A DNA stretch of 64,000 nucleotides, from the NCBI GenBank assembly GCA_946965045.2, contig OX337231.1, forward strand, positions 2,108,001 to 2,172,000, written 5' to 3'. Under the pieces are notes generated by a model. That model was given only the letters and a program-made list of their open reading frames with translations, did not search any database and was not told where the DNA came from. Shown one piece after another: positions 6,332-64,000 of this stretch. How positions within the stretch are numbered: position 1 is the first letter of the stretch; every line of letters starts with the position of its first letter. Source of the DNA: Epithemia pelagica. Taxonomy: Eukaryota; Protista; Bacillariophyta. The position numbers were made by a program, and so were the translations under genes.

Positions 6332-7330
6332 TCACCAATACAAATACAAGACGTCGTACGGATCCAAGTCACCAGACGGTCGACCAAAGGGGTATCGGAA
6401 CCCAGACTGACGCTGTGCCGCCCGCCAATCAAAGCAGGCTCCACAGACGCACACGACTTGTTCGTCATCGTAACCACTCTCTTCTTTGGAAATGAGCATC
6501 TTGCACTCGGGACATTGAGCCCAATCACTCCCTTCCCCAGAATTTTCCATGGCTCGCACAATTTGGGCAAAGGGAGAAACCATAAAATTTCGTCGGCATT
6601 CTCGACAGGAAAAGACTCGATTGGTCACCTTCTTGTCGGGATGATCTCGTTTGTAAGCACGAGGATGATCGCAATGAGGACAGTGTACCGTGCACATGTC
6701 TGGTTTGTTTCCCTTGGCCAACTCGGAGAGACGAAAGTGTTGTGTCAGTTCTGCTTTGGAATGGATCAATCCACGTTTGATCAATTGCGATTCTCGAATC
6801 GGTCGTCGACATTGTGGATGAAAGCATTGCAACGGATAGTTTCGCGCACTCTTCTGTGCTTGGACCACGTAGACTTGGCGCATGCAATCGATGCAAGCAG
6901 CCTCATGCCAATAGCAGCTCTTCATGAGTCGGACTACGGGGCGGCATTCAAAACAAATGGGGCACTCTCGCATTGGTCCCTCCTCCTCTTTTTCAGTTGA
7001 TTCTCTAGAAGTGGACGTGGTACTGGGCAAATGTTTATTCCATTCATGAGAAGTATATTCTTTCGCGGCATCACATCCTTTGAGTTCGCTGATAGATTCA
7101 TCGCATTGATCATTGTACATTTCCATGATATCGTCATCCTCCCAATCCATTTCATGAAAGTACTCGGAAGTAGTGTTCCAGTTCTGTGGAACGTGAGAAG
7201 CACAGCTTGTAGCTCGTTTTCGATCGTGCGTTCGATGGACATGGGTGCGAGCCGAGGATCGATGGCTTCCTCCTCCGCGTGAGAGCTTTCGGCTCTGTCC
7301 TTGAGCGTGTTTCAGGTATCCTCTTGGCAT
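6332..7330 (-). CDS. RBR (RING-IBR-RING)-type E3 ubiquitin ligase-like protein
   Basis: CPICFEC..CYWHEAACIDC..CFHPQC (RING1), HCPHCDH..CREC (IBR), WAQCPECKMLISK..VCVCGACFDW (RING2). Confidence 0.85.
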   Translation of the reverse strand: MPRGYLKHAQGQSRKLSRGGGSHRSSARTHVHRTHDRKRATSCASHVPQNWNTTSEYFHEMDWEDDDIMEMYNDQCDESISELKGCDAAKEYTSHEWNKHLPSTTSTSRESTEKEEEGPMRECPICFECRPVVRLMKSCYWHEAACIDCMRQVYVVQAQKSARNYPLQCFHPQCRRPIRESQLIKRGLIHSKAELTQHFRLSELAKGNKPDMCTVHCPHCDHPRAYKRDHPDKKVTNRVFSCRECRRNFMVSPFAQIVRAMENSGEGSDWAQCPECKMLISKEESGYDDEQVVCVCGACFDWRAAQRQSGFRYPFGRPSGDLDPYDVLYLYW

Positions 7331-34270: not shown

Positions 34271-35078
34271 ATGTGGTGTCAGCGTGTCAGCACATACATT
34301 CTACCTCGAGCGGTTTGATCCCCCTAGTTTTTACCTCCAATAAAGCCTCTTATGGAAATGATCAAACTCCCGCTTAGAAGTACATATTGACAAATGTTCC
34401 AGAGACCCTATTAGGCTCCATCCACATTGCCACTTTAAGGTCTGCCGCACACATCTCATATAGACTCTATCTTAATCTTATCCATCAGCCTCTAACTGCA
34501 CTCACCATTCACCAAGATCTAACGTTTCAGGATATTCATTCTACGTCTGGCTTCTTGCAGATCAGCTGCTCTAGACTGTTCATCGTTCTTTCTCTGTATC
34601 TTTTTACTGCCACGTTCAAATTCCAACTAGTGCGGGACTCTACACACCTTTTCGTATCTGTAGTAGAATCTCAAGAAGCGGGCTCCCTCTCAACTGGATT
34701 GTAGTCGAACTATGTTTCCATGATACGTTGAATGTAGCAAATTGAAGTGATTCCCTTTGCTCTTTGCTTTGAGACGTTTCGATTTTTCGATGGGCACTTT
34801 GGAAATGTTGAAAGTTGGGAGCATTAACCGCGACTGGTCTATTTGTTTTTCTTTTCTTCCGCCTCCCTGCCCACACACACACATGATCGACATTGGCGAC
34901 AAGACCAGCAACGAACCAAGTGACAACCACAACCACAACAAGAATACACAGGAATCCCGACAGAGTCCAAGCCATTGCGTTGAAGAGCAACACAACGACG
35001 AGGGCGTAATCCCTCTCTTCTATTTTTGAGCGCACCTCTTTTTCCTCTTTGGGACTTGCACAAGAATCTATCATCATC

Positions 35079-37253
35079 ATGTCTCCAGTGAGCGTCAAGC
35101 TGGAGGTGGACAACGAAAGCAAGACAATCGAGAAAGGCAATGAGATCGTCCCGTCATTGTCTTCAAGTTCGTCGTGTCGTCAATCCTCGGAACCCACCGA
35201 TACTAGTACCAGTAGTACCGCACCAACAGAGACCACCGAATGGTATGTCATGTATCGCATCTTGAAGGGATATTTTGACAAACACGGTCACACACGAGTG
35301 AAACGAGGTCCCAAAGGGGAGCACCAACTACTGGAGAAATGGGTCCAGCAGCAACGGGATCAATGGAATACGGTAATGAATGGTGGAGGTGCGCTTAACT
35401 TGGAGAGCACTGCGGATCAAATGCTCAAGCTCGATGCCATTGGCTTTTTCGCCGAGGTCTCACCAGCGGAAGGTAACACGAGTAATCCTAGTGATCCTCA
35501 GACCAACCACAACCATGATCAGACAACACACGCTCCATCCACAACCGATAACGTTTCTTTGCTGCCTGTTTCTGCAACCAATAGATCTCACGCGAGTAAC
35601 ACTGCAACTGCTCTTGTTTCCCCACCACAAGGGCGGGAATCGAATCTAGATCCGTCTCAGCTTCATCCTCCACCACCTTCTGTACTGGTCAAGGAAGAAG
35701 AGGACGATGACAATAATGATGTCGTTTTCCTATTCACAAACAAAGCCCCGGCTCATGTTTCTTGCCCACGGACAATCCATGCACCCTCTTCCACTGGTAC
35801 GCCAAAGAAGGTGGTTCCTTCCCTTGTTCCATGGAGTCCTCATCAAGATGATGATACAATGAGCGCGCAAAATAATCCTCTTCCTACTGCTGGATAAGGA
35901 GATCGATCCACAGCCAACCCATCGCCGACAACGCCAGCCTTGGAATCTCCACCGAGGAGTTCCCGACTCTGCTTTGAGCCAGCTCCTGCTATGGCAGACC
36001 AGTACCAGGACATGATTCGAACGAAACAACTCCTTCAAATTGCTCCACTGGAAGCTCCTCGAAAGATCCCATCCCCCAACAACAGCAACCATACAGAGGC
36101 ATCTTCCTTTTCTTCCGCGTCTGGCTTATCGGAATCAAGTCCTACGACAAACAATCCAAACAATGATCAAGACGAAAGAATGCGATTTTCCTCCAAACTC
36201 AAAGAATGGCTCTTTTTGCGTTCGTCCAACGATTTCACCATAGACCAGCCATCCGTTGTTCGAAGATGTCGAAACATGAAACGCACCCTTCATGGAGCAG
36301 GGGACAAGTTAGAGCAACTCATGAGCAAAGACGACTTTTTAAATGACACATTTGTCTCTGTGTTGACCGCACGAGACAGATATCGTAAGAAATGGTGTAC
36401 GGCTGGATACATAATCGAAAATCGATACTACTACTACGCTGTGGGTGGAGACCAAGGAGTTTATCATGATGAAAGTGACCTGTGGTGGTACTCGAATGTT
36501 CAGATGGCCAAAGAAGCCCTTTGGGACTCACTGGTGAGTTGGGTTACGGAGGATGACGACTTGTTGGCAGTGCTCAAGCAAAAGACCCACCACAACGGTC
36601 AACCTCACAAGCGGAGAGCCGACCAGAACCCTGAGCCTTCCACAGAACGTCCTTGGAAACGAAGGGCTTCCATGACTCCTTCGACCCAATCGACACAAAC
36701 ACGAGCGCAAGAGACATCTCAAAGGGTCGTCGAAGTATCACCCGTATTTCCTCTCAATATAAAACCGGATTGGCTTCTTTGGACCCATGCTTCACGACAA
36801 CTTCGAGGTGAGGACACGGCGAAAGCGTCGTCCAGCGGCACGAATGAATCAAAGCAGCGTTGTTTCCAAAAGTGCCGTCGATTTCAAAAAACAGGTGAAT
36901 GTTCCTATGGCTTTGAATGTATCCATGCGCATGTGTACAAACATGGGAGGTTTGGTGTTCCCGAACATGTGACCAAGGACTTGGACCGTTCGGAAATTCA
37001 AGTATGGTGTCACCAGACCGACAATCTTTCCGGCGACAAGACGTCATTGTCGCCACGACGTCCAACTCATTGCTATACGAGTGGCTACGTCGATGGCAAT
37101 GGTTATTTCTTTGTGTGGGGTGTGGGACAGGACCGACAAGGGACGGGCATGAAATGTCCTCAAACGGGGCTTTGGTGGTATAAAACCAAGGAAAAGGCCA
37201 TTGGGGCTTTGATTCGAAACCTACGGTCGTCGGGACGACGGCAGCAATCGTAA
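35079..37253 (+). pseudogene. HA-CCCH-WWY family copy A (in-frame TAA at 35895-35897)
   Basis: HA domain WYVMYRILKGYFDKHGHTRV..WVQQQR..KLDAIGF; CRRFQKTGECSYGFECIHAH; ORFs 35049 and 35940 share a frame across one stop. Confidence 0.8.
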
Positions 37254-38650
37254 GGGCGAACCAAGGAATGCCTTGACACTATAAATAAGAATGTGGGTGG
37301 AAACATGGTGTGTGGCCCATAGCTTGTTAGTCTCAGGAAGCAGGACCACCCTGTAGGAAGAACAACCCGAACGAAGCCTTTCAAGACTCCTGTTTGTTCT
37401 GTTCTCCAGTTTGAAAGCACGAGAGGTCATCAAAGCAAGGAGAATAAAGGATGTGGCTACATCTACCTGGGATGGTGTGTGGGCGCCACATTCGCCCTAA
37501 AGCGGTTCGATCCCCATAGTTATCAATTAAACCTCTAGTTGATTTATCGAATTCCCGCTTAGAAGTACATCAGAATGACTTCCGGAGACCCTTTTAGGCT
37601 CCATCCACATTGCCACCCTAAGATTTACCGCACACACGCACACCACAATATATGGTAGTCTAGTCTATCTTATCCACGATATTGGGGCGAAGCCCCCAAC
37701 TGCACTCACCATGGCAAAGACTAAACGTTTCTGGAGATTCATTTCTTCGTCTGGGCTCTTGCAGTTGAGCACTAATAGGTAGATTGTTAGATCGATTTCC
37801 TGTATCTTTGTACTGCCACGTGAACATTCCAACTATTGCGGGACTACACCGTAAGAGACGAAAATTCAAACGGTTTCGTATCTCGAATCTCGAGTAGCGT
37901 GCTCCCGCTCTTGCAGTCGGATGATGTCCTCGTGATACATTGGATGTGGCAAGTTGTAGTGATTCCCTTTGCTTTGCTTTTCCGTTTCGAGGAAAGATAC
38001 TTTGTGGACTATGGAAAGCTATGCGGTGTAGAAAGTTGTTCGTCTGAGTTCAGTATGAACGGGACGGGTGGGCCGGAAGGCTTGGGGTCTGGGGTGGGAA
38101 TTTCCAGAAAGACCAGCTGTTCCGAAAACGGACGGACACTAGAGTAAAAAGTACAATTGAGCAAACATGGCGGTTGATGAAACGGTTAAATATATATGGC
38201 AATGATATAGCAATGAATATTTTAATGGTCAGTCATGGTATGATTTGGAGGTGCACCTCCAACCGCGTAAAATGTGAGTGGGGACTTACCCTTGACGAAT
38301 TTCTAGTAGTAATGTAAGACGCCCAACCGTTCTGGAATGACTGAAACAAGACTTTTTGTTTGAAAGCTCGTAGGAACAGGTAGCAAGACGTTAGAGAGAA
38401 TTGCTGTGTTCGATAACGGGCATGAATCGCTACAACGGCAGAGTTAAATTCATATTATCATCATACAGCAACAAGGAATTATAAATTGACTAGGAAAGCA
38501 TGTATTATGAATTTTGTTTTTCTTCGTTCGTTCTGCTGACCAGGATGCATGTGGTATTGATAATAACATATTGGTATACGATAAAAGCAGAAGCCCTTAT
38601 ATCTCTCGATTGGCACTCATATTGTATTTCAGTACACATATCACAATCGC

Positions 38651-38989
38651 TCAATTCTCAAAGGTCGTTTCTTCGGACTCCTTCTCGTCGACTTTGTTGT
38701 CTTGGAGCCTACCAGTCGGGTATTTCCAGCGATTCACTGCACTTCTGGAGTACATGCCGTATTCATCACGCGAAAAAGCCTGGTCTGCCACACCATCGTC
38801 TTCGCCACCAAGATAGGTGAACAGATCATTGTCATCACCGAGTTCGAAGTAGTTTTGAACAAGAGCATTGACTTCTTCATCTTGAAACAGATTATCCAAA
38901 GGGCGAGGAATATTGCCGGTGTGATCCAAGTCAGGAGTGTTGTAGCTGTAAGTGCAATTGTATCCGTGTTCTTTGTCATTCTTCTGCAT
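38651..38989 (-). other. Uncharacterised 112-aa ORF inside the Helitron
   Basis: Open frame with protein-like composition; no motif recognised. Confidence 0.35.
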
Positions 38990-39693
38990 GGGAGTATAAA
39001 TTTCCTCTATTACGGGATGTTTGGCCTTGGAAGCAGCACTCGACAGACCAATACTCTCACTGGTTTGCCTCTTGTGTATGGAAATCAGAGAAGTCCATCT
39101 TGTTGGCGGGCTCTCTACATGCTAAGATTCAAATGGATATAGGAGTAGAAATTTCCTCTATTAAGGGAACTTCCGCTTTCGAACTAGGACTCAACAGACC
39201 GATACTACTCTTACTTGTTTTCCCTCTTGTCTATGGTCTCAAAGTACTCTTTCTTGTTGGCGGGCTCTCTACATTCTAAGATTCAGATGCACATAGGAGT
39301 ATCACTTTCCCGCCAATGAAAGCAGGCTCCGCAGACGCACACGATCGTAACTACTCTCGTCGATGGATATGAGCATCTGTTTGCCTCTTGTGTATGGAAA
39401 TCAGAGAAGTCCATCTTGTTGGCTGGCTCTCTACATGCTAAGATTCAAATGGATATAGGAGTAGAAATTTCCTCTATTAAGGGAACTTCCGCTTTCGAAC
39501 TAGGACTCAACAGACCGATACTACTCTTACTTGTTTTGGCTCTTGTCTATGGTCTCAGAGTACTCTTTCTTGTTGGCGGGCTCTCTACATTCTAAGATTC
39601 AGATGCACATAGGAGTATCACTTTCCCGCCAATGAAAGCAGGCTCTGTAGACGCACACGATCGTAACTACTCTCGTCGATGGATATGAGCATC
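38990..39693. repeat. ~152-bp minisatellite with a 316-bp higher-order duplication
   Basis: TTTGCCTCTTGTGTATGG at 39064 and 39380; subunit CTTGTTGGC.GGCTCTCTACAT.CTAAGATTCA occurs four times. Confidence 0.9.
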
Positions 39694-39963
39694 TTGCACT
39701 CTGGTAATGAGCCCAATCACGCCCTTCCCCAGAATTTACCATGGCTCGCACAATGAGGGCAAAGGGAGAAGGAATAAAATTTCGACGGCTTCTGGACAAG
39801 AAAATACTCCATTGGTCACCTTTTTGTCGGGATGATCTCGTTTGTAAGCACGAGGATGATCACAATGAGGAAAGTGCACCGTGCACATGTCTGGTTTGTT
39901 TCCCTTGGCCAACTCGGAGAAACGAAATTTGTTGTGTCAGTTCTGCTTTGGAATGGATCAATC
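39625..39963 (-). pseudogene. Captured fragment of the RBR gene (matches 6421-6771)
   Basis: Co-linear match from CCCGCCAAT to GGAATGGATCAATC with substitutions and indels. Confidence 0.9.
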
Positions 39964-39981
39964 ATCGGTCGAGTTTTGTGC

Positions 39982-40263
39982 AGCAAAAAGGCCTTGAACA
40001 TGATGGTGATGATAATAGTGGGATCTTCGAAGATAAAGATTTATGGCAAGAGAGGCGGTTCGACGTTTGACAACAACTTTGACACCGCCGGTGCAGGAAA
40101 AGCGTGAACAAGGACAGACAAGGATCTTGTGTGATGGCTGTTGGCTGTTGGACTTTGCACACAAACACGAGAGACGTCAATAGCTCAGTCAGAGGTTGGT
40201 TGACTTCTGTTCGACCAAGAGATCGAGAGAGCGACTGCACAGCAACACAGAGATACCAATCGT
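39982..40263 (-). pseudogene. Captured LHC promoter/5'UTR and first codons (matches 63512-63813)
   Basis: AGCAAAAAGGCCTTGAACATGATG..AGATACCAATCGT; encodes MFKAFLL as in the LHC gene. Confidence 0.9.
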
Positions 40264-41171
40264 TGGAAATCAGAGCACTCCATCTTGTTGGAGGAATTGT
40301 GAACGAAACGAGGGCCCATCAACCGACAACAACAATGATTATGCTCCTCCTCCCACGAGCAATCCAGATGACGTCCACGACAATTTCATGCAACGACTGG
40401 ATGATTCGGCCGCCTTGTATGCGGCATCACATCCAGAACCACATCCAGATGTGGGTGGTTGGTTATACACCGCAACAGGTTGGAGAAAACTGCTGGTCAG
40501 CACTATGGAATAGTATCATTAGGGTTAAGGTTTCAATTGGTGCACGCAGGTAGTGCCTCTATGTTAGGCACAATAGAGCTCCTAATAGCAAGAACTAGGT
40601 AGGAGTACGATTTTAGTGCACTTTGGATCTTAATATTACAAAAAAACCCAGCGTGTAGTGCACCTTGGGTGAGATAGTGGTTCGGGTCTTAAATCCACAC
40701 TTGATCGAACAGATCAGGGGTTCGATTCCCCCCACTTCAGCACAAAGTTAAGATTCGCCATGTTTGGGGTTCATGGCCATAGACGTATCCCCGCTGGTAG
40801 AGTGGAAGTCCTTGCTGTGAGCTCTGCTGATGTTTGATTCCACTGGGCCGGCCGGTGACACGGTTTTGTCTTTTTGATTCATACTCTACCCTACTTTTCT
40901 CTTCTATTTAGCAAGTGCCCAATCACGTAGCCAACGATCACACCCAACACCCAACGACGACCAACATCATGGGCGCGCAAAAAGTGCTCCCATGGCGAAC
41001 GTTCGTTGCATTTCTTTTGTTCGTGTAAGGAGGCGCTTCTCTTTATCGTAAATTTGGTGAGCACGACAGAGGCGGAACTTTAGTTCGGAAGTATCCACTC
41101 CTACCGAACAACCGTGAAGGAACGGCCGTGAAGCATTCTACGATTCATGAGTTTGTACGGAATCCAACCGC

Positions 41172-42110
41172 ATGGACGCATTTTGGCTCATTTGGATTGG
41201 CATTTTGGTACAAGCCTATCCTAACGCCAACGAGGAGGACGAGTAGTAGCACCAGCCCAATTCACCAAGACGACAACACGAGAAGGATACGAAACGAGTG
41301 GCAAAGCAGAATCCGTCCAAGAAATTTCTTCGTCAATCTTTCACAGGAACCACAACCAGTCGTTTGGAACTACTCTTGAAAGAAACTAGAACAAAACAAG
41401 CAAGTTTGGATGCACCTCCCAAGCAACGAATGGACTTGGACCAGAAACTGATGGCTTGAGATGAATTGGACTTTGATTAAATGGATGGCAATGAGGATGA
41501 ATCCGTCTTTGGTCGTCCGTCGTCACGAGGCACACTGGTTCAACAACGATTACCACAGTGGTTGCCTCGTCCCAAGGATGCTCGCAATCGTCCACAGTCT
41601 TGCCATTATCAACATCAACAGTATTGTCGGTGGGGCAACGCAAAAACGGAGTAGGGTTCCTCTGATACGAAAGAGGAAAGCTCCCCTCGACCCGGCAGCC
41701 GGGGCCATTGCAAACCAACCGCCACCACGAATATTGGCTGTAATCACACGACAATACCCACTCCACCATGATCCTCCAAGCCAAAACCAACACCGCCCCA
41801 ATTCACCAAGACGACAACACGAGAAAGACACGAAACGAGTGGCCAAGCAGAAATTGTCCAAGAAATGTCTTCCTTGGTTTGGCACCACTCTTTAAAAAAA
41901 CCAGAGTCTTGTCATTGTCAATATCATCAGTATTGTCGGTGGGGCAACGCAAAAACGGAGTAGGGAATTCCTCTGGTACGTAAGAGGAAAGCTCCTCTCG
42001 ATCCAGGAGCCGAGGCCATCGCAAACTAACCGCCACCACAAACCCCGCCAAACAGACTGTGGATGCTATTCGCTAGTAGTCACACGACAATACCCACTCC
42101 GCCATGATCC
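41172..42110 (+). pseudogene. Degenerate, partly duplicated gene fragment with a signal-peptide-like start
   Basis: One frame reads MDAFWLIWIGILVQAYPNANEEDE**HQ.. with six in-frame stops; 41601-41727 is repeated at 41912-42038 and 41256-41330 at 41797-41870. Confidence 0.5.
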
Positions 42111-42325
42111 GTTACTAGCTTTAAATCATGGATGAGACAAGAACGTATGGTTCTCGTTTGGTTCATCGATTCCACAACACTAGCAACTATACTAAGACTG
42201 CGCGTCCATGCGTCTGCCATTATAACATGAGTCCAAACCGTATGTGTGCTTGCGCTAGACAATCAATAGACTATTAGTTTTACTCTCTTGGTATTACAAA
42301 TAACCAAGATACTTACATATCTCGT

Positions 42326-43168
42326 TCATAACATATATTCCACATCATCCTCCTCGTCTTGCTCGTCGCTCCCTTCGTCGCTCTCTTCATTAACCTTGTA
42401 TTCATGTTCCTCTTCTTCTGAATCATCATTCTCATCTGAATCATCATTCTCATCTGAATCACCATTCCAATTGCCATAACAGCCATCCTCTTCATCTTGT
42501 CCGTCTGAATCGTCTTCCTCAGTGTCATCCTCTTCCTCTTGCCAGTCGTCGCCTCCATCGCTTTCCTCTTGATTGACCTCCAACTCACTGAATTCCTCAT
42601 CTTCCTCTTCTTCTGAGTCGTCGTTCTCATAGGAATCGCTTTCCTCTTGATTGACCTCCAACTCACTGAATTCCTCATGTTCCTCTTCTTCTGAGTCGTC
42701 GTTCTCATAAGAATTCTCATCGTCTTCCCAGTCGTCACCATTGTCACTCTCTTGTTTGCAATTTTCAGTTGACGAAGAAAGCACATAATTCTCAGGAAGA
42801 TCAGGTTTGCTAAATTCGTGACGTTCCTCCACCAAACTTAATTTAACAACCCCGTCAATGAGATCATCATCGTTGTCATAGACGTAAGCCTTCATAGCAA
42901 TACGTTTCCCATTTTCCTGACAAAGTCGAATATCACAGAGTCGTGATCGAAGCCTTTCTGCGATACATCGCAACACATCAATTGCCTTCGAATACTTTTG
43001 GATGACACACAGACGGATGTAAAAATCATGCTCACTGAAATAAACGATACAATCAACAGGTTTAAACGCACAGCCTGCCTCGATGATAGTCCGTACCGGA
43101 TAACCAGGCATGCCTGGATGAGGGAAAAACCCGGCACGATAACGGAGACCTACACGACGACGGGGCAT
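42326..43168 (-). CDS. Uncharacterised Helitron-internal ORF with a long acidic repeat tail, divergent from RepHel
   Basis: 280-aa ORF; SYENDDSEEEE(H/D)EEFSELEVNQEES occurs twice. Confidence 0.55.
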   Translation of the reverse strand: MPRRRVGLRYRAGFFPHPGMPGYPVRTIIEAGCAFKPVDCIVYFSEHDFYIRLCVIQKYSKAIDVLRCIAERLRSRLCDIRLCQENGKRIAMKAYVYDNDDDLIDGVVKLSLVEERHEFSKPDLPENYVLSSSTENCKQESDNGDDWEDDENSYENDDSEEEEHEEFSELEVNQEESDSYENDDSEEEEDEEFSELEVNQEESDGGDDWQEEEDDTEEDDSDGQDEEDGCYGNWNGDSDENDDSDENDDSEEEEHEYKVNEESDEGSDEQDEEDDVEYML

Positions 43169-43390
43169 TATGCTTTCTTCGCAAAGGTTTCGACAAAACT
43201 ATAACAGAAGTCGAACAAACACAGCAACTTCCTACATCATTTCGTTCTTTTCTGCAGCACATTCAAATTAACCTAATGCTATGGTGGTGGTGCCACAAAG
43301 TTCAGATTCCATGCAATCGAATGAATTGAGCGCAAATGATAAGTAAGGAAATATTGCGATCATTCAAAAGTGATCCAATGAAACTAATTC

Positions 43391-43643
43391 CTTGGAATCT
43401 CGGATCAACAGTTTGGTCGCAGAACAATTTCACAGCCTAATACACAAACCACATGTCACAGAGAGTATGCATAGCTCCGTTAGCACAGAACCCATATGCA
43501 GGTCAGTTGGTAGACATTCCTCTGAATCTCGTATCGCCAGTTAGGTCGCAGAAAATTTTGGAGCTTGTTAATATACGAACCACATGTTCCAAAGAGTATG
43601 CATAGCTGCCTTAGCACAGAAACCACATGTAGTTGTCAGTTGG
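43391..43643. repeat. Two diverged ~130-bp tandem repeats upstream of RepHel
   Basis: GAATCTCG..GGTCGCAGAA..ACCACATGT..GAGTATGCATAGCT..TTAGCACAGAA..GTCAGTTGGT occurs twice. Confidence 0.8.
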
Positions 43644-43769
43644 TTCGTGACAGTTAGGTAGAAGACCTATCTACTGACTGTGTCACTTACCTTTGACTTC
43701 TCTTCTCACAATACTCATTTGGCCTAAGTTGTCACCAGTTGTAACCAGCAAGATCTGCATTACCAAGAA

Positions 43770-46700
43770 ATGTTAGCTAGAGACACCTCGATCCAAAAAG
43801 GAATAGCCAGAGCAGTGGCAAGTCGGGATTCTCTATTGACTAAGAAAGGAGACTTGTTTTTCCCAAAAGTATGTTGTGTCTGTGATCAATTCATCAAGGT
43901 TGGGTCAGAGAAATGCTTGAAGATTGATGATATTCTTCATGAGAAAATAAAACCAAAATTCATGAAGTCTAATCTTGACTTTTCACACTATGGTACCGGA
44001 CTAGAGAGCCAGAAACAGATCAAGAAACATTACACACAAACGTGTTACGATTCCTCTCATTCCAACAGAGAGTATCGTCCGCTGCAAAGCTTGGTTCTTT
44101 CACCGTCCTCTTATGCAATCAAAAAGGGACAATCTGAAGGATTTGGATGTTGCTCAGAATGTTACCATTGCATCATTTACATGAAAAAAGGAATAGTGAA
44201 CCTGATAAAATTCCCAAAAATGCTATCATCAATGGCTATATGATTGGTCCTACACCTCTTTGCTTGCAAACTCTGAATGAGGTCGAACTCGCACTCATTT
44301 CGCCGGCGAGGACAAACAAACACGTTTTTTCATTCACGGCAGGATCACATAAATCAATTAAGGGTTGGCACTCCTTGTATTACAATGACCTCAAAGCTGT
44401 CAATGGGGTTATAAATTGGTGTCTGTCAGCAACAGGACAAGCTGACAGTGCACTTCCTAATCATGGCGAACAACAAAGTGAAGATACTGGCCAAAACATT
44501 GCTGCTCGATGGACAGAACTTTTTGATCACGACATGGATGATAGTGATGATGACAATGTCAGTGATGTTGTAAATGACATTCAAGACAATAATAGTGGCA
44601 TCAGCGACAATATGAATGAAAATGATGACACAGATCAACCGCCACTTAATAGCAATGAATCGCCTCTTCTGCCTCAAATTGCTGTTGTTTTAACAGGTCC
44701 TTTCACACCTACACAGAAAGCTTTGACTCGTCAGCGCACAAACGTTCGATGGAATTTGGTCAAAAAAGCGCTACAATGGTTGAAACAACACAATCATTTG
44801 TACCATGACTTTGATTTGCCACCAGAACATCTTGTAAAACCAATTGTCATTGACAAAAGTGATGACGCACCTGCCTCAACGTCCAATGTTGAGCAAGTTT
44901 TTGAAATCACGGCGGTCTTTCCTGATTCTGATGAACCTCAGCAGAAAAATGGAGGGTTCTCCTCCCAGGATGATTTGAAGCAAATGACGCTTGATCGTCT
45001 TTTGGCAGACCATGACAATAAAGATGCAACATCGATTTCATGACCTTCGAAAACCTTGTTGAAAGACTATCAAGGTTCTAATCTCCTGAAGGCATTTCCT
45101 TTACAGTTTCCTTATGGGATTGGTGCCTATGATAAAGATGGAAATCCCCATGTCGGAATGAGTTACTTTGGGCATCTGATGCGACACTCAAGCAAGTTTT
45201 TTCACCATGCTGATTTTGTATGTGTCGTACACAATATGTTTGAGCTTCAAAGAATGGTCTCAAATTCATATTTGCGAACCAGTGATACACAAGCAGAATC
45301 ATTTGCTACAATCACTGACGAACAGATTCAAGATGCCATCAAGCGCCATCTTGAAAATGCCCAGGGATCAGGTCCTAGTGACCAGTTTTTGAGAAAGATG
45401 AAAGCTGTCGCATCTTCTATGGGACACACTGCAGGAGCTGCCAGAAAAGCACGACAAAATATGCTAGCAATGATTGCAAAATTTGGTTTGCCAAGTGTGA
45501 TGTTTACAATTACACCAGAAGATGCCGTAAATTTCAGACTGCGTGTAATGGTGAACAAAAAGGTTGGTGAAGCAATTCCACCTAACCCAGCTACAACTTC
45601 AACTTTGGATCAACAAGAATTCATCCTTGACTGTGCTCGCATTAGACAGATTCACCCGGGAATGTGTGGTATTGACTTTGAAAATGTGATTGCAATAACG
45701 ATTGAGCATCTCCTTGGCTGGGATATGAAAAAGAGAATGAACAAAATTGATGAAGGTTTATTTGGTGATTTGCTTGCGTGGTGTGATGCAGTTGAGGAGC
45801 AAAGAAGAAAAACACTTCATGATCATTTTCTCTTATGGTTGTTAAAGTGGTCAAAGTTATTGAAAGGACTTGCCAATCAGGCAACAAGAGAACACTTTTC
45901 GAAGCTCTTAGTTGACTATGCATCAAAGGTCATGAGCACACATATGCATGGCGAGACTATTCCGCCTTGTGTAAATGATGCTTGTGTCTCACGTGCCTTC
46001 CACCCATGTTCCAAACAAGACATTCGGAATTTGCGAACAAAGATTTGTGTAACATCCCTTGGTGGGAAATCAATTGTCAGATGCGCAAACTGCAACACAG
46101 CAATGACAAGTGAAGCTCTTGTTCTTTCCAGATTGAAAAACATTCTCCCAGCCATGGCTTTTCAAGAACAACAACCACAGAATGACCCAATGGCACAAGC
46201 TTCATCCTTCAATGTTCCACTCACAAATTCAATGGAATTGTTCCTGATGCGTCAGCAGATCTTACATCCCAAGAGAATGACAACTGATGGCACCTTTGTT
46301 CTGACAGTATTACGCAATTTGCATCGCTCAAAACATGCTATTTCTTGTTTCAAGAAAGGAGACGAGTGTCGTATGCATATTCCGTGTGCAGAGTGTGAAA
46401 AAACAGAGTTGAAGTTTTCAGAAAATTCAACAAAGTGGTTTGATTGGAAAGGCAATGATCAATCCAGACACTTGTTCACACTGGAAGCAAATCAAAAACA
46501 CCATGATGCATTTGTCAATATTCACAATTGTCATGCAAGCCAGTTTTTTGGTTGCAATACTAATGTTGTGACAGCTGTTGACGGAGGAAGTGTCATGTAT
46601 ATGACATGTTACATTTCTAAGAATACTCAAGAAGAAGACAGTTCACTGTTTACAAATGCAGCTAAACAAATGATACGAAAAATGCGGGAAAGATTGCTTG

Positions 46701-49579
46701 AACTTGAGCAGACTACCAATTCGACAGAAATTGAGACAGTTGAGCAAGACCGTGAAACTTCTGGAATGAGGGCATTAATTGGGGCAATGTTGCTGTCCAC
46801 TTCTGCACATATATGCAGTGCACCGATGGCTTCTTACTTGGTGCAAAATAATGGCTCAAGGTTTCGTTATTCACATGATTTTGCTTATGTGAATCTCAAA
46901 AATTTTGAAAAAGCAACCTTGCAAGATTTGTCCCTTGATTCGATTGATGGAAACACCTTTCTGACGTCAGATGTTGCAAATTACTTGTTCCGCCCAGAAG
47001 AACTTGAAGATGTTTGTTTGTATGATTTTCTGTCCAACTTCACAGTGACCAGGAAAACATCAAAAAGCTTGGAATGGATCAAGGAACACCCTTCAAAAGA
47101 CCATCTTGGTGTAACAGCCGCAAAACATACAAAGATACCACTTGTGACTTACAAAGATTTTGTTGACACCAAATATTTTGGGAATCGAAACATTGAAACA
47201 GAAGAAATGCCGGATGATATCTTGCACGAGGAACATCATTACATGGAACTTTATGGAAAAAAAGCAAACATCTTGTTCCATTCATTCAGATCCTTTCCAG
47301 GAGATTTGACAAAGGATGGTTCATTTGTTAAATGTTTCCAAGCAGCACTTCGGAGTGGAATGATCACAGCTGAGCATCGGCAAATTCTTGCTAACATTCA
47401 AGATTGTCGGAACAGTCTAAATTCTGGAAGACCAGTGGATCCTCTGGAAAAAGAAACACAAAAGCCAACTGACAACTGTTGTGTCCATGATGAATATGAT
47501 AATGAAAATGATGAGGATAGTGCTCTTCACAAAGATTTTGACAGTGCCTTTGAGGAGCTTATTGAGACGGTCAATGACATGAATGAGACAGGACTTGACT
47601 TGAGGTCGCCAACCAACATTTATCAGATTCCATCATGTATCATTTGCAAATGTGGAACGTCAAACTGTGGCATTCAAAACATTGTTACACCTGTTATAGA
47701 TGAAGACAACGGCTTTACAGGAAATGCTCTACAGCTCCTGGAAGACACCTCAGCTTCAAATGTGGGTCTTGAGTCCACCCCTGAAACGTCCTTTTCTCAT
47801 CATGTAACCAAAGCAGCTCTTCATGAATTGGCAATTTCACGGACAGAGAGAATTACAGCTGGTGATGGACAGCAAGATATCAAAGCGATTGGGACATTGA
47901 AAAATATACGCGAATATGCAGCCCACCACTTCAGAGACGATATGGATCAGCGCTATGCATTCGAAGCAATCATTTCTGCTTTTATATTGCGTTTGTATGA
48001 TGAGGCAAACCGAAATTCAAATACAAATCCTGAAGCAATGCCTACACGGAAACGACGGAAACTTGACAACATTCAAAAGACATTGCAAAAAGTCAACAGG
48101 GGAAACCAATTCATTGCATTTCTATCAGGAGCAGGGGGGTCTGGGAAAAGCCACGTTATCAAAACAATTGTACAATACGCCAAAAATTTGTGCTACAACC
48201 TCCACATCAGGTATGACAAGAGAACTATTGTCGTTACTGCTCTTACAGGTGCTGCAGCAGTTGGGATAAACGGAGAAACAACTGCTATGGCTTGTGCACT
48301 AAACAGAGCAATTACCGAGGAACCAGAGCAATGGAAAAATGCTTATCTGTTGATCGTTGATGAAATTTCATTTGCCTCAAAAGAAGTCGTTGATACTCTT
48401 GATCACAAATTGCGACAAATATTGCAGCCGGATGCAGCCTTTGGTGGAATTGCTCTTGTCTTTGCAGGTGATTTCACACAACTGAAACCAGTCAAAGCCC
48501 AACCATTATTCCTTTTTAAGGACTTCGTGAAATGGTATGACTGGGTACACACATTCCTTGAACTTAAGACAAATCACAGGTTTCGCCTTGATCCACCATG
48601 GGGGACAATTCTTGAGACATTTCGAGATGAGGGACCAAGCAATGGTGATGTGGCGACAATCAATACTCGTGTTGTTGGATCTAAACATGGACCAACAGAG
48701 AAAGACATTCCTCCAAATGTGGTTTATGCAACAAAAACTAATCTTGATCGAGCAGCAATCAATGATGCCATTTTTGCTAAACATCTGGAAAATACCCATT
48801 CAAAAGATCCTAATGTTGACCCTCCCATGCACACAATCTGTATCAAAGCGTCCAACTTGAAGTGGAAAAAAGCGGGAACAAGAAATGACTATGTTGATTT
48901 CAACAAGGCAAGTGAAGATATCCTATATGCCACCTGTGGTGAGGGTCACTTGCAAGGACGAGACAACAAGAGATATGATCCACTTTTGAAACTGTATTAT
49001 GGAAGACCATTGTGTATCAATGAAAACAAAGACGTTGAGTCATGTATTGCTAATGGAGCCATGTGTGAATTCAATGGCGTTCTCCTTAAGCAAGGGGTGA
49101 CATTAACTGATTTGGAGAAAATATTGATTGATGGATATTATGTTTGGAGTCTTAAGGTCACTCAAATTGAGGGAATCAAGGTGAAAATTGTTGATGGAAA
49201 TTAGAACCATGTTGTTCTTTTGAAGCCTCAGACTGTTACTCAACAAGTGCAGTTCCCACTCCCCATGTTTGGCATGAAACGAGTGAGGAAAACGATGAAA
49301 ATGACGCAGCTTCCTCTCAATGTGTCCAATGCAAGGACTGTTCATAAGCTACAAGGGAGATCAATCGAATTTCTTTACATATTGAACTGGGACTACACGG
49401 GCAATTGGAACTATGTTTGTTTGTCGAGAGTTTGCCAGCTCAAAGGCCTTTTCCTTGCAAAACCACTTATAGCCGACAAATGTCGTGGAATGTCTGATGA
49501 ATGTAAAGAGTTTCATGTACATTTCCGGACAACTAAACGTCCGCCACCCGCGGTTCAGCTCGATGAAAGACATAATTAA
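43770..49579 (+). pseudogene. Helitron RepHel (DUF6570-like N-terminus, HUH Rep, PIF1 helicase), disrupted
   Basis: CCVCDQ..CSEC..PKNAIING..LNEVELALIS; AFPLQFPYG; FGLPSVMFTITP; EEQRRKTLHDHFLLW; YMTCYISK; GAGGSGKS; IVDEIS; AGDFTQLKPV; TVHKLQG; YVCLSRV. Frameshift near 44184, in-frame TGA at 45041 and TAG at 49202. Confidence 0.95.
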
Positions 49580-49943
49580 CTTTCATTTCTAGGAAGTGCT
49601 GCCAATGATAAATAGAATAGTCCTGTCCACTGTACTACTGATACTGAACTCAGCCGTCCTTTACCGCCTTGGCGGTTTCAATTGGAAGCATTAACCGCGA
49701 CTGACCGCTCCTTCCGCCCTCATTTGACCCACAGATATGTTAGAAACATTGGCGACAAGACCTGAAACTCCAGAGACATCTAAGAAAGAAGCAACCGACA
49801 ACGACAGCAGAACCAGAATAAGCCATCCCGCAGTCACGTGATTGCAACACGACAGCGACGGTGAAGGCGTAATCGCTCTACTGTCGAGCGTAACTCTTTT
49901 TCTCTTCTTCCCTCCTGGCTTGGACTACCCAGCATACATCATC

Positions 49944-52090
49944 ATGTCACCTGTCAACATCAAGCGCGAGGTGGACAACGAAGACAAGACAATGGAGCAA
50001 GGCAACGAGGCGGTCTCATCATTGTCGTCTTCAACTTTGTCTTGTCGTCGTCGATCGTCGGAACCCAACCTTGCCGGTACTAATAGAACAAGCAGCACCG
50101 CACCAGACAAGGACAACAAGGCAGCAGGAAAAAGTGGGACCACGGGATGGGATGTCATGTATCGCATCTTGAAGGCGTACTTTGACAAACACGGTCATAC
50201 TCAAGTGCAACAAGGTCCCAATGGGCAGCACAAATTATTGGAAACATGGGTCAAGCAACAACGGCATCAATGGAACGAGTGGATGGGTAGTGGAGGTACG
50301 ATAGACCTTGGTTGGTTGCGGCCGATCGCATGGACAAATTAGATGCGATTGGCTTCTACTCCGAGTCCCTGCCCTTGGATATCGACAACCACCAAGAGAA
50401 TGGCCTCACAAAACCATGTTCTCCATCGTCGGTTGACCATCCCCCAAACGACATCGGACAAACGTTCTTGTCTGTACCATCGACTAGAACTGATGCTTCC
50501 TCGCTTCCAGCTCAAGGGAAAAGTAGTCATACCCATGTCCCCGCAACTGCGACTGTCTCTCCACCACAACAATGGGGTTCAAAGCTAGATCAAGCTGTCA
50601 AGCAAGAAGATGATGACGACAATGACGATGTCGTGTTCCTTTTCACCAACAAAGTCCCGTCTCACGTTTCTAGTCCACTGAAAACTCATGCGCCCTCTTC
50701 CAGTTTGGCATCAACGATGGTTCCGTCCCACTACTCACCGCTGCAACATGGTCAAGATACAACCAGCTCATCACCAAAGAGCCCACGACTTTGCTTCGAA
50801 CCAAAGCCTGCCATGGCAGACCAGCTGGATATGGTTCGAACGTAAAAACTTCTTCAAACCGCGCCACTTCAAGCTCCTCGCAAGGTCACGTCTCCCGTCA
50901 CTACGACCGAAGCGTCTTCTTTTTCTTCTGGCTTTTCGGAATCAACTCTTTCCACCAACCCCACACAACGACGTTCTTCTATTCGTGGCAACAGTAGTAC
51001 GGATGATGAACAACAGAAACAAATGAAACTTTCCATCAAGTTTAAAGACTGGCTCCTGTCGCGTTCGCCCAACGAAAAAGACGCGGACCATCCATGTATC
51101 ATCCGTCGAGGTCAAAACTTGAAACACACCCGTCAAGGCAAACCCAAATGCGCAGAGAAGCAGGATGATCTGGAGCAAATCATGACCAAACAAGAATTCT
51201 TTAGTAACGAACAGATTCTGTTCAGTGGTGGCCAAGATAGCGTGAGAAACAAATGGATTACAGCGGGCTACAGTGTTGGAAATCGTTACTATTACTATGC
51301 AGCCGGGGGAAAACAAGGAGTTTACCATGTCAACAGTGACCTTTGGTGGTATCCGTCGCGGCAGCTTGCCAAGGAAGCTCTTTGGTATGTACTGGCGAGC
51401 TGGACGGCTGAGGATGACGGTCTTTTGGAATTGCTCAAACAAAATCATGGCAAACGAAGTGCTGATCATCTGCCAGATCCCTCCACAGAACGTCCTAGCA
51501 AACGGAGGGCCTCCATGAGTCCGTCGGTCCAATCCATAACACAAAGTGAGGAACCCACCACAGTGGTCGCAGAAGGACCACCCGTATTTCCGCTCAATAT
51601 AAAACCAGACTGGATTCTTTGGACCCATACTTCACGACGACTCCGAGACGAGGACACGACGAAACCGTCTTCCAGTGGCACGAATGAATCAAAACCGCGT
51701 TGTTTCCAAAAGTGCCGTCGATTTGAAACAACAGGTGAATGCCCCTATGGATTTAAATGTATCCATGCGCACGTGCACAAACATGGGAGATTTGGTGTCC
51801 CCGAACATGTTACCAAGGCCTTGGACCGTTCGGAAATTCAAGTATGGTGTCACCAGACCGAGAATCTTTCCAGCGACAAGTCTTCATCGTCGCCACGTCC
51901 AACTCATTGCTATACGAGTGGCTACGTAGATGGCAATGGCTATTTCTTTGTGTGGGGTGTGGGACAGGACCGACAGGGGACGGGCATGAAATGTCCTCAA
52001 ACGGGGCTGTGGTGGTACAAAACCAAGGAAAAGGCCATTGGGGCTTTGATTCGAAACCTACGGTCGTCGGGACGACGGCAGCAATCGTAA
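49944..52090 (+). pseudogene. HA-CCCH-WWY family copy B
   Basis: Short frameshifting deletion near 50312 relative to copies C and D; TAA at 50843-50845 where copy C has AAA. Confidence 0.85.
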
Positions 52091-53022: not shown

Positions 53023-53688
53023 CTATAAAAACTTCCCTTCATCAGAAATTCTGACTTCTCCCCATTTGCAGACGGCACCACACAGCCTTTGTCTTGATTG
53101 ATTTCCCTTGATCAACAAGCGAGAATTCCTCGGCTCTCCAGAACTAGCGATAATGGTTGAACGTAGAAAATCGTCAAGATTCTTGGGTGGACTGTGCGTT
53201 TCTGGGTTCCTCACATAGCCACATGGATGGTCATCACGACAGAATGGACATTGATTGGAGATCACGTTGGACATGCAAGTCTCACACATGGTGTGACCAC
53301 AGAAGAGTTATTTCAGCTTGGTTCGGGTGTGACATGTCGGGCATTCGGGTAAGTCTAATTGCACGCAATGACTGTGCCGAGCTAAATGTCCAACTGTCTT
53401 TTCCAGCACCGTGATTCGGTCGTTCTGTGCCGTGATTCGGTCGTTCTGTGCCGTGATTCGGTCGTTCTGTGCCGTGATTCGGTTGTTTTGTTCCGTCAGT
53501 TGATTTTGCATGTTTTCAATCATCGAAATAACATCCACATTTCTGTACCTGCTCTCATAGGCGCCCGCATGGCCGTTTTGCAATTGAACAACGGCAGGAG
53601 TCGACTGGTCTCCCAATGCAGATGAACGGACGGGGCTGAAAGCTGGATATACTAACTTCTCTGCGACGGCTTCTGGCAAAGACTCCAT
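53023..53688 (-). pseudogene. Coiled-coil + C3HC4 RING gene with an in-frame TAA (copy 1)
   Basis: Reading through the stop gives CPTCHTRTKLK*LFCGHTMCETC..CPFC; heptad AQNDRIT is encoded by a 21-bp tandem repeat. Confidence 0.8.
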
Positions 53689-56726: not shown

Positions 56727-57356
56727 CTATAAAAAAACTTCCCTTGATCAGAAATTCTGACTTCTCTCCATTTGCAGACGGCACCACACAGCCTCTGTCT
56801 TGATTGATTTCCCTTGATCAACAAGCGAGAATTCCTCGGCTCTCCAGAACTAGCGATAGGACATGGTTGAACGTAGAAAATCGTCAAGATTCTTGGGTGG
56901 ACTGAGCGTTTCTGGGTTCCTCACAAAGCCACATGGATGGCCATCACGACAGAATGGACATTGATTGGAGCTCACGTTGGACATGCAAGTCTCACACATG
57001 GTGTGACCACAGAAGAGTTATTTCAGCCTGGTTCGGGTTTGACATATCGGGCATTCGGTTAAGTCTGATCGCACGCAATGACTGTGCCGAGCTAAATGTC
57101 CAACTGTCTTTTCCAGCACCGTGATTCGGTCGTTCTGTGCCGTGATTCGGTTGTTTTGTTCCGTCAGTTGATTTTGCATGTTTTCAATCATCGAAATAAC
57201 ATCCACATTTCTGTACCTGCTCTCATAGGCGCCCGCATGGCCGTTTTGCAATTGAACAACGGCAGGAGTCGACTGGTCTCCCAATGCAGATGAACGGACG
57301 GGGCTGAAAACTGGATATACTAACTTCTCTGCGACGGCTTCTGGCAAAGAATCCAT
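56727..57356 (-). pseudogene. Coiled-coil + RING pseudogene (copy 2)
   Basis: Same TAA as copy 1, with two fewer 21-bp units. Confidence 0.8.
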
Positions 57357-62729: not shown

Positions 62730-63531
62730 TTAGAAGAGGGGCTTGAAAAAGTAGGGAGTTTCGGCCACGACGGGAGATCGGTAGAGGGCTTCTTGGACGA
62801 CAAAGCCCAAAATGGCCATCATGGCCAAACGACCATGTTTGATTTCCTTGGTCCTCATGGCCATTTGACCAGCCGAATCTCGAGGGAAAAAGCCAAGGGG
62901 ATCAAAGCCACAATCACCGGCCGTGTAATCCTTACCCTTGCTTTCTCGGACCTTGTCATTTTCAATTTCGACAATGCCAGCCAAGAGAATGACCAAGACC
63001 CAGTACAAGGTGTCAACCTTGCCCAATCCACCATTCAACAAGGAAGGACTGGCACCGGTCTTGGTCAACAAGGTGGACATGCCCATGGCATCGGCCAAGG
63101 GCTTGTCAAACAATTCGGCCAAGGGCCAGCCCACAACAGCCAACATGGCCAAACGAGAATGTTTCAATTCCGCCTCGCGCATGTACATGAGACTGGCCTT
63201 GTCGGCACCCGCAAAGTTAAAGGGACTTTGGTGATGAAACAAGAAACAATGCCTCGCATTAGAAGGGAGACAACACAACAGAAATGTCGGTATGTGCGAT
63301 CCAGACAACTTACTCAAAGCCAACATCTCCGGCCATGGTACCATCCAACAACTTTGGTCTGGGCAAAAAGGGAAGGGAGGGAGACATGGATTTTTGCGAG
63401 GACGAGCCTTGTTCGTCTTCGTCAAAGAGAGCATAGCGTTGGACCGCGCTCGATGTAGAAGTCGATCGGCTGGAAGGGACAAAGGCTGTCACAGAGACCG
63501 TCGAGAGGAGAAGCAAAAAGGCCTTGAACAT
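62730..63531 (-). CDS. LHC: Light-harvesting fucoxanthin-chlorophyll protein (intron 63226..63313)
   Basis: Signal peptide + AFVP cleavage motif; splice restores GDVGFDP; REAELKHSRLAMLA and KEIKHGRLAMMA helices. Confidence 0.97.
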
Positions 63532-64000
63532 GATGATGGTGATGATGATATTAAGGATGGTTGTGTATGATAAAGATTTATGGCAACAGAGCGGGGGTTA
63601 GACGTTTGACAACAACTTTCACACCGCCAGCGCAGGAAAAGCGTGAGAGGAATGGAAATACAAGTATCTTGTGTGATGGCTGTTGGACCTTGCACACGAG
63701 CACGAGACACGTCGATAGCTCAGTCAGTCGTTGGTTGACTTCTGGGTTGACGGCGGCGTCGATCAAGAGAGATCGAGAAAGCGACTGCACATCAACACCG
63801 AGATACCAATCGTCGAACTTTTCTGATCTCATTGTTGTGTTGGAATGATGCGCTGTATGCGACTGACTCATCTTGCGACTGACTCACGCGCGCGCAAGCA
63901 CAGGCGGTCAGAGGGGCAACGGACAGACGCGTCGTGACGTATTAGACCCGAAGAACGATCCATCGGGTTTGCCACTCTGTTGTCATCGCATATCGCATAT

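Follow-up and report, generated by a model that had tools for sequence, protein, structure and literature searches.

The donors of the gene fragments carried by Helitrons are usually scattered; in Brassica napus, the donor was close by for a single capturing element only, and 5% lay on the same chromosome but far from the donor (PMC11986588). Capture of internal gene fragments by Helitrons is still argued indirectly because donors and elements are usually far apart once they are seen. Capture by gap filling, with a bias toward templates in cis, has been documented for TIR transposons, and among Pack-TIRs the cis-located captures are single copy while multicopy ones are always distal (PMC8277862). 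Within the HLE2 (Helitron2) group, DUF6570 has been reported as a marker (PMC11417382). Here we describe an HLE2 family of the diatom Epithemia pelagica that carries a chimera of two host gene fragments, one member of which lies between the two genes from which the fragments derive. The window, i.e., the whole stretch of DNA that was analyzed, is a 64,000-nucleotide portion of contig OX337231.1 (positions 2,108,001 to 2,172,000), and coordinates without a contig name refer to it. The element had the following features.

38040 to 49682, plus strand: Helitron2-type (HLE2) element of ~11.6 kb, apparently between T and T, recognized by its RepHel domains and by the same ends in seven other copies with unrelated flanks
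38044 to 38056, plus strand: 5' short terminal inverted repeat of 13 nt, the perfect reverse complement of 49641 to 49653
38987 to 39695, plus strand: internal tandem array in which the cargo is set, built of 154-bp units and including a duplication (98%) of a 316-bp unit
44147 to 49204, plus strand: RepHel gene, recognized by its DUF6570, Helitron_like_N and PIF1 helicase domains and broken by a private TGA at 45041 to 45043
49641 to 49653, plus strand: 3' subterminal inverted repeat, the perfect reverse complement and partner of 38044 to 38056
49664 to 49675, plus strand: 3' stem-loop with a 5-bp GC stem and a TT loop, located after the right repeat and 6 to 7 nt before the element end

The 13-nt inverted repeat and the 3' hairpin were conserved in all copies. 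A T preceded the first shared bases in all seven copies for which the 5' junction was examined (C5b falls outside this count), and T was the last shared base in 8/8. Pfam searches detected DUF6570 (PF20209, E = 1.4e-20) in ORF 44147-45043 and Helitron_like_N (E = 3e-16) and PIF1 (E = 9e-21) in ORF 45056-49204, and the two frames are continuous apart from the private stop. The element thus combines a Rep (HUH) domain and a PIF1-type helicase with DUF6570, short inverted repeats, a 3' hairpin and insertion between T and T, all of which characterize HLE2. No Exo_endo_phos match, indicative of the AP endonuclease of Helentrons, was detected at E <= 0.01 in the RepHel ORFs. The short TIRs, the stem-loop after the right repeat, the T-T target and the DUF6570, Rep and PIF1-type helicase combination with no endonuclease are those described for HLE2/Helitron2 (PMC11417382). 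Nothing structural set the diatom family apart from that description; it has, in addition, the internal 154/316-bp tandem array.

The element occupies the spacer between two tandem paralogous genes (35049 to 37253 and 49842 to 52090), each encoding a helicase-associated HA domain followed by a CCCH-like region, and the peptide motif RLCFEP.PAMADQ was present in both, at ~35.9 kb and ~50.8 kb. The insertion could not be dated through a disrupted host gene, as it lies in intergenic sequence. A 21-bp tandem repeat unit was common to 53409-53496 and 57119-57164, which are 3.6 kb apart.

A 639-bp chimera is carried within the element, 1.6 kb from its 5' end and 9.4 kb from its 3' end, in antisense orientation to RepHel. 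The pieces of the chimera, its surroundings and the donor regions were as follows.

39309 to 39378, minus strand: second copy of the initial 70 nt of the RBR piece (the 316-bp units are 98% identical; 70-nt matches at 96 to 97% in six copies)
39625 to 39963, minus strand: RBR-derived cargo piece with frameshifts and lost cysteines, from self-BLAST, alignment and codon comparison
39964 to 39981, no strand: 18-nt filler, sharing 8 nt with 6798-6805 and GTCGAG with 63500-63505
39982 to 40263, minus strand: LHC-derived cargo piece, comprising ~282 nt upstream of the ATG and 20 nt of coding sequence, from self-BLAST and alignment
40264 to 40294, plus strand: right flank of the cargo, where the array unit resumes (90 to 93% identity to 39079-39109 and 39395-39422)
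6421 to 6771, minus strand: donor region in the RBR-like ORF 6332-7330, 31.3 kb from the 5' end of the element
63512 to 63813, minus strand: LHC donor region, comprising upstream sequence and the first codons (ATG at 63531; the coding sequence, which has one intron, reaches 62730), 13.8 kb from the 3' end of the element

In a self-BLAST of the window, 39625-39963 matched 6421-6771 at 87.5% over 352 columns (E = 9e-123, +/+), and 39982-40263 matched 63512-63813 at 79% over 309 columns (E = 1e-70, +/+). The minus strand encodes the two donor genes, and the orientation and order of the cargo pieces are those of the donors on the chromosome. The alignment placed the LHC piece at ~-282 to +20 relative to the ATG at 63531, with a coding part of MFKAFL and two bases of the following codon. 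The RBR piece corresponds to codons 188 to 303 of the 332-codon ORF 6332-7330, the final 29 codons and the stop being absent. Frameshifts, an 11-nt deletion and loss of cysteines were observed in the RBR cargo relative to the donor, and a comparison by codon gave 17 nonsynonymous, 8 synonymous and 6 gapped codons. Translation from the cargo ATG (40001, minus strand) yielded MFKAFLL, then the filler-encoded HKTRPM and then out-of-frame RBR sequence, with a stop after 61 codons.

The junctions were then considered. The 8 nt that the filler shares with 6798-6805 are its first 8 nt and lie 27 nt past the RBR breakpoint in the donor, and its GTCGAG lies 7 to 12 nt before the LHC breakpoint. This match to the donors was of marginal significance (P ~ 0.04 with shuffled filler). 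A search of the filler against the window detected no other source, with a single 3-mismatch chance match. Microhomology at the outer junctions between element and cargo was limited to 0 to 2 nt. Within 39571-39630, an 8-nt string of the array unit, TTGGCGGG, recurs inverted at the RBR breakpoint as CCCGCCAA at 39625, 42 nt away; the coding strand of the intact RBR donor reads TTGGCGGGC at the same breakpoint. This inverted string may be a trace of the priming of a first template switch. Array-unit sequence was present on both sides of the cargo, and since 40264-40294 takes up the array unit again, the cargo interrupts the array. The duplicate at 39309-39378 was made by the 316-bp tandem duplication after capture; this duplication takes in the first 70 nt of the RBR piece, indicating that the array was still rearranging after the capture. 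Copies C17 and C11 lacked one unit.

The donor at 62730-63531 is an LHC/FCP gene, with a chlorophyll a/b-binding domain (Chloroa_b-bind, PF00504) detected by Pfam at E = 1.4e-32. The other donor is a cysteine-rich ORF of 332 codons, in which no IBR or RING match was detected in Pfam and none by a PDB sequence search. In a protein atlas queried by language-model similarity, this ORF was nearest to RBR/IBR clusters (score 0.92), with ten of the ten best matches belonging to one family. Its identification as an RBR/IBR E3 ligase is plausible from this similarity and from the cysteine pattern, and has no profile support. Searches of both donors with unspliced queries at E <= 10 against the 60.5-Mb assembly, in which a single haplotype is represented, detected only the donors themselves, the eight cargo copies and one RBR paralogue. 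This paralogue, on contig 11, has 67% identity and continues past the cargo edge; apart from it, no closer donor paralogue was detected for either gene. As the host ORF is intact, the cargo is frameshifted with its cysteines lost and the paralogue extends beyond the cargo edge, the direction of copying was from gene to element. The element therefore has the attributes of a gene-capturing Helitron, namely, an internal segment from host genes and intact, unique parents outside the element. A preliminary description of this DNA had named both source regions, the 18-nt filler, the native minus orientation and an out-of-frame fusion, with all of which the self-BLAST and the translation from 40001 agreed, and it had called for confirmation that these two loci are the best donors, which they proved to be, being the only ones in the assembly, with the 67% RBR paralogue as the nearest other sequence.

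A whole-genome search detected the full 639-bp chimera, with identical junctions and filler, in seven further places at 98 to 99% identity: contig 4 (0.65 Mb), contig 5 (1.72 and 2.13 Mb) and contigs 9, 11, 16 and 17. The cargo thus moves with the element, in eight copies of 98 to 100% identity with distinct flanks. The flanks are unrelated and homology starts and stops at the same termini, which indicated that the copies arose by transposition. The joint of RBR, filler and LHC was not detected outside Helitron copies in the whole-genome search, and a metagenome scan gave no match to it. Three of the cargo-bearing copies are internal-deletion derivatives. The 5' 612 bp was also present, at 98 to 99%, in at least eight other members of the family that have no cargo. 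Among these cargo-free sequences, C3, C13, C5c, C2a-c and C9b were considered as pre-capture forms and rejected, as they are deletion or composite derivatives with breakpoints unrelated to the cargo edges. In a coordinate-only search, the tandem array was detected only in the eight cargo copies.

The preliminary description had asked whether other copies carry the same cargo or different local cargo. The same chimera was found in the seven others. Different local cargo was not found: the extra segments of other copies were nested repeats (a 1-kb repeat, a 600-bp repeat, a 2-kb foldback and a 1.1-kb repeat), and none were host fragments from the fetched flanks, which were 10-kb stretches reaching only a few kb past the element on each side. 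A single window can thus mislead, in that a seemingly local and private cargo is old and family-wide.

Several of the nested repeats were characterized further. The 1-kb repeat (L019:2435-3440 and L032) has many genomic copies at 93 to 94% and, within the family, is present only in C17 and C11, which marks these as sisters. The 2-kb insertion (L021:1368-3415 and L030, in C16 and C5b) is foldback-like, with inverted arms of ~690 bp at 93%, and its site corresponds to window position 38749. The 600-bp repeat (L028:907-1508 and L024, in C4b and C9) has at least 40 genomic copies at 78 to 98%, and its site corresponds to window position 43506. Three composites (L036, L037-L038 and L039-L040) were located on contig 2 at 6.25, 5.37 and 1.22 Mb, in which a second 5' end, with 95% identity to 38039-38328 and belonging to a related ~14-kb subfamily, comes immediately after the 5' 612 bp of the family (99%); this arrangement looks like head-to-head-end stacking of left termini. 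A sister Helitron2 family, with 72 to 76% identity at both ends and in a 705-bp segment, was present on contig 2 (~2.512-2.522 and 6.087-6.098 Mb), contig 17 (~0.438-0.445 Mb), contig 10 (~2.077-2.084 Mb) and contig 6 (~2.754-2.759 Mb). This sister family matched neither the cargo nor the tandem array.

The age of the capture was examined by comparing the donors with the majority state of the copies. Counting substitutions only, the RBR piece was 91.1% identical and the LHC piece 87.3% identical to the donor, with indels in addition. Three lineages were resolved among the five full-length copies, namely, C17 with C11, C9 with C4b, and the window copy by itself. Every lineage stands 51 to 59 substitutions per 10.5 kb, or ~0.5%, from a single node, and a tree of all eight copies over 2.06 kb was likewise star-like. 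Set against a common ancestor of the copies only ~0.5% back per lineage, the substitution divergence of 9 to 13% between cargo and donor indicated that the capture is ~10 times older than the current burst. Mutagenic synthesis was considered as a source of the high divergence between cargo and donor; clustering of substitutions was weak (6 adjacent pairs in the RBR piece against 2.6 expected, P = 0.03; not significant in the LHC piece), and this explanation was not relied on.

The window copy had the longest terminal branch, with 54 private substitutions per 10.5 kb against 22 to 36 for the others, and with 15 private substitutions per 2.06 kb among all eight copies. Its RepHel gene is split into ORFs 44147-45043 and 45056-49204 by the private TGA at 45041-45043, a codon that is AAG in the four remaining full-length copies; in C17, the only difference in the RepHel frame is a 7-bp deletion that seems to lie near the 3' end of the frame. 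A private 705-bp deletion was also present, the segment being retained in 7/7 other copies and, at 72%, in the sister family. Three of the variable sites in the cargo show a derived base in the window copy (shared with C5a at one of them) and the donor base in the other copies. The full-length copies carry only lesions of their own, which indicated that the 1,685-codon RepHel frame was open at the burst node. With the observed spectrum as weighting, 3.4% of substitutions in the RepHel ORF create a stop, and a copy resting at one locus for an extra 3 to 6% of neutral divergence would be expected to acquire 5 to 10 nonsense mutations. The probability of no nonsense mutation was ~8e-3 to 3e-5, and 0.13 only at the lowest age bound, with indels ignored. 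This low probability indicated that the lineage was kept alive by repeated transposition.

The location of the window copy was assessed statistically. The two donors lie 56.7 kb apart on one contig with the window copy between them; two random loci would be as near as this with P = 0.0019. With 8 (or 15) copies placed at random, at least one would lie between the donors with P = 0.0075 (or 0.014), and the joint chance of a copy between the donors and of donors so close was 1.4e-5. Elsewhere, the family showed some clustering: two pairs of copies lay no more than 50 kb apart, 0.2 such pairs being expected (P = 0.017). The rest of the window yielded no remnant of an older copy of the family, and no cargo-bearing copy of intermediate age was detected in the genome. 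As both donors are unique and are 57 kb apart on the same contig, the capture probably took place in this neighborhood.

These data bear on several explanations for the origin of the cargo and for the position of the window copy. The preliminary description suggested capture after insertion here, in which case this copy alone would have gained both pieces. Proximity of the donors is all that speaks for such a private capture, whereas the identical chimera is present in seven other copies and, at the three variable cargo sites described above, it is the other copies that retain the donor state, and private capture was rejected. Of that proposal, templated repair from nearby DNA stands as the best mechanistic reading, but capture after this insertion does not, in view of the seven other copies. 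The view that the cargo had not been carried from elsewhere was likewise unsupported, as the cargo was made once, is ~10 times older than the ancestor of the copies and has been carried round the genome. Identical cargo in copies on other chromosomes that predate this insertion had been named as evidence against the proposal; such cargo is present, but that these copies predate the window copy is not clear, the longest terminal branch being that of the window copy. Alternatively, RBR 6771 could have been joined to LHC 63512 without a transposon, by a deletion, in a small circular DNA or through a templated insertion, and the resulting chimera taken up by a Helitron later. The joint is indeed shaped like the junction of a 56.7-kb deletion, with a filler that would have been copied in part from immediately within the deleted side. 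Nevertheless, no such junction exists outside Helitron copies, the cargo borders at its two outer edges on array units of the element, and an extra, separate capture step is needed; we regard this origin as improbable.

If the cargo was captured by the family in this neighborhood, the window copy could be the physical founder, which captured the cargo in place, stayed and acted as master of the later burst. A copy between two unique donors with cargo co-linear with the chromosome, a longest terminal branch belonging to that same copy, a three-way star of equal depth that fits daughters leaving one master, and the lack of older cargo-bearing copies elsewhere are all in keeping with a founder. 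The open RepHel frame at the burst node is at odds with it, given the low probability of escaping nonsense mutations at one locus, as are the lack in the window copy of the 705-bp segment that all seven other copies and the sister family have and the even spread of its private changes, with no mosaic of old and converted parts. This even spread also left a mosaic founder, partly overwritten by gene conversion, unsupported. An untouched founder is unlikely, and the window copy reads as a decayed member of the burst. A further explanation is that the capture took place here long ago, that the lineage left and that a later insertion fell between the donors by coincidence. The ~10-fold-greater age of the capture, the scattering of the other copies over six contigs and the lack of local relics agree with this, and a chance of 0.0075 to 0.014 is not negligible given the windows and transposon families scanned; with very many windows scanned, a coincidence of 1% will sometimes be picked up. 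Yet ~1% is still small, co-linear orientation and order add a further factor of roughly 2 to 8 against coincidence, and the family shows some positional clustering. We consider coincidence doubtful but a serious possibility.

The explanation that we prefer, and to which we would give about an even chance, is that the chimera is an old, nonfunctional cargo of a Helitron2 family, made once by templated repair in this neighborhood, and that the lineage lingered here by short-range reinsertion. A break within the internal tandem array of the element would have been repaired by copying, in succession, ~350 nt of the RBR-like gene, a few nucleotides close to the breakpoints and ~300 nt of the LHC 5' region, before the array was rejoined, i.e., by a capture of the filler-DNA or template-switch type. 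The cargo-bearing lineage would have gone on transposing to give the eight cargo-bearing copies of today, and the position of the window copy between the donors would reflect a lineage kept near its birthplace by short-range reinsertion. That the cargo is placed inside a repeat array, that its donors are nearby and co-linear with it and that the filler matches them favored repair-templated capture over terminal read-through. In end-bypass (read-through) transduction by Helitrons, a rolling-circle element likewise mobilizes host DNA (PMC4778049), but here the cargo is away from both termini and does not continue into the flanks, and the donors are 31 kb upstream and 14 kb downstream. End-bypass transduction does not fit a cargo that is internal with element sequence on both sides.

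A chain of local reinsertions has left no trace, there being no relic in the window and no intermediate-age cargo copy, which counts against it, and the clustering of the family could stem from a preference for certain insertion regions rather than from local hopping. As a stronger and rather speculative form of the preferred explanation, the birthplace would be here, the lineage would have stayed within a few tens of kb for ~10 times the age of the burst, and the LHC upstream sequence may drive RNA through the RBR piece. The birthplace reading, if true, would be evidence from nature that a rolling-circle transposon can capture DNA by cis templating (filler DNA) and can reinsert at short range.

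Nothing pointed to a function of the chimera. Among the five full-length copies, the cargo varied at 2.8% of sites (18/639) compared to 2.2% for the whole element, and as the cargo is at least as variable as the rest of the element, there was no sign of constraint. The longest perfect runs between cargo and donor were 43, 38 and 34 nt for RBR, and a single run of 24 nt was present for LHC. The preliminary description had raised the idea that RNA driven by an LHC promoter might silence the donor genes. Judged from these sequence matches, small-RNA cross-talk of the cargo with the RBR-like gene would be possible in principle.

The kind of event described here, a chimeric gene-fragment cargo in a Helitron, is known; the host group is unusual and the location unusually informative. 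As in the gene-fragment captures of maize, bats and Brassica (PMC2575219, PMC4778049, PMC11986588), two unrelated gene fragments are fused, noncoding and decaying, and the cargo lies inside a RepHel element and was amplified along with it. Unlike in those systems, the carrier is an autonomous-type Helitron2 of a diatom, and the single-copy parents are on the same contig and flank one member of the family. With filler-DNA or gap-filling capture, as in P element gap repair and Pack-TIRs (PMC8277862), the locus shares an internal, repetitive and probably fragile site, nearby templates on the same chromosome, several proposed template switches and a short filler. It differs from Pack-TIRs (PMC8277862) in that a multicopy family has one member beside the donors, in its minimal microhomology and in being a rolling-circle rather than a TIR element. 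Two unique donors bracketing a family member, together with an apparently partly templated filler, make this a concrete, testable case of repair-templated capture from nearby DNA.
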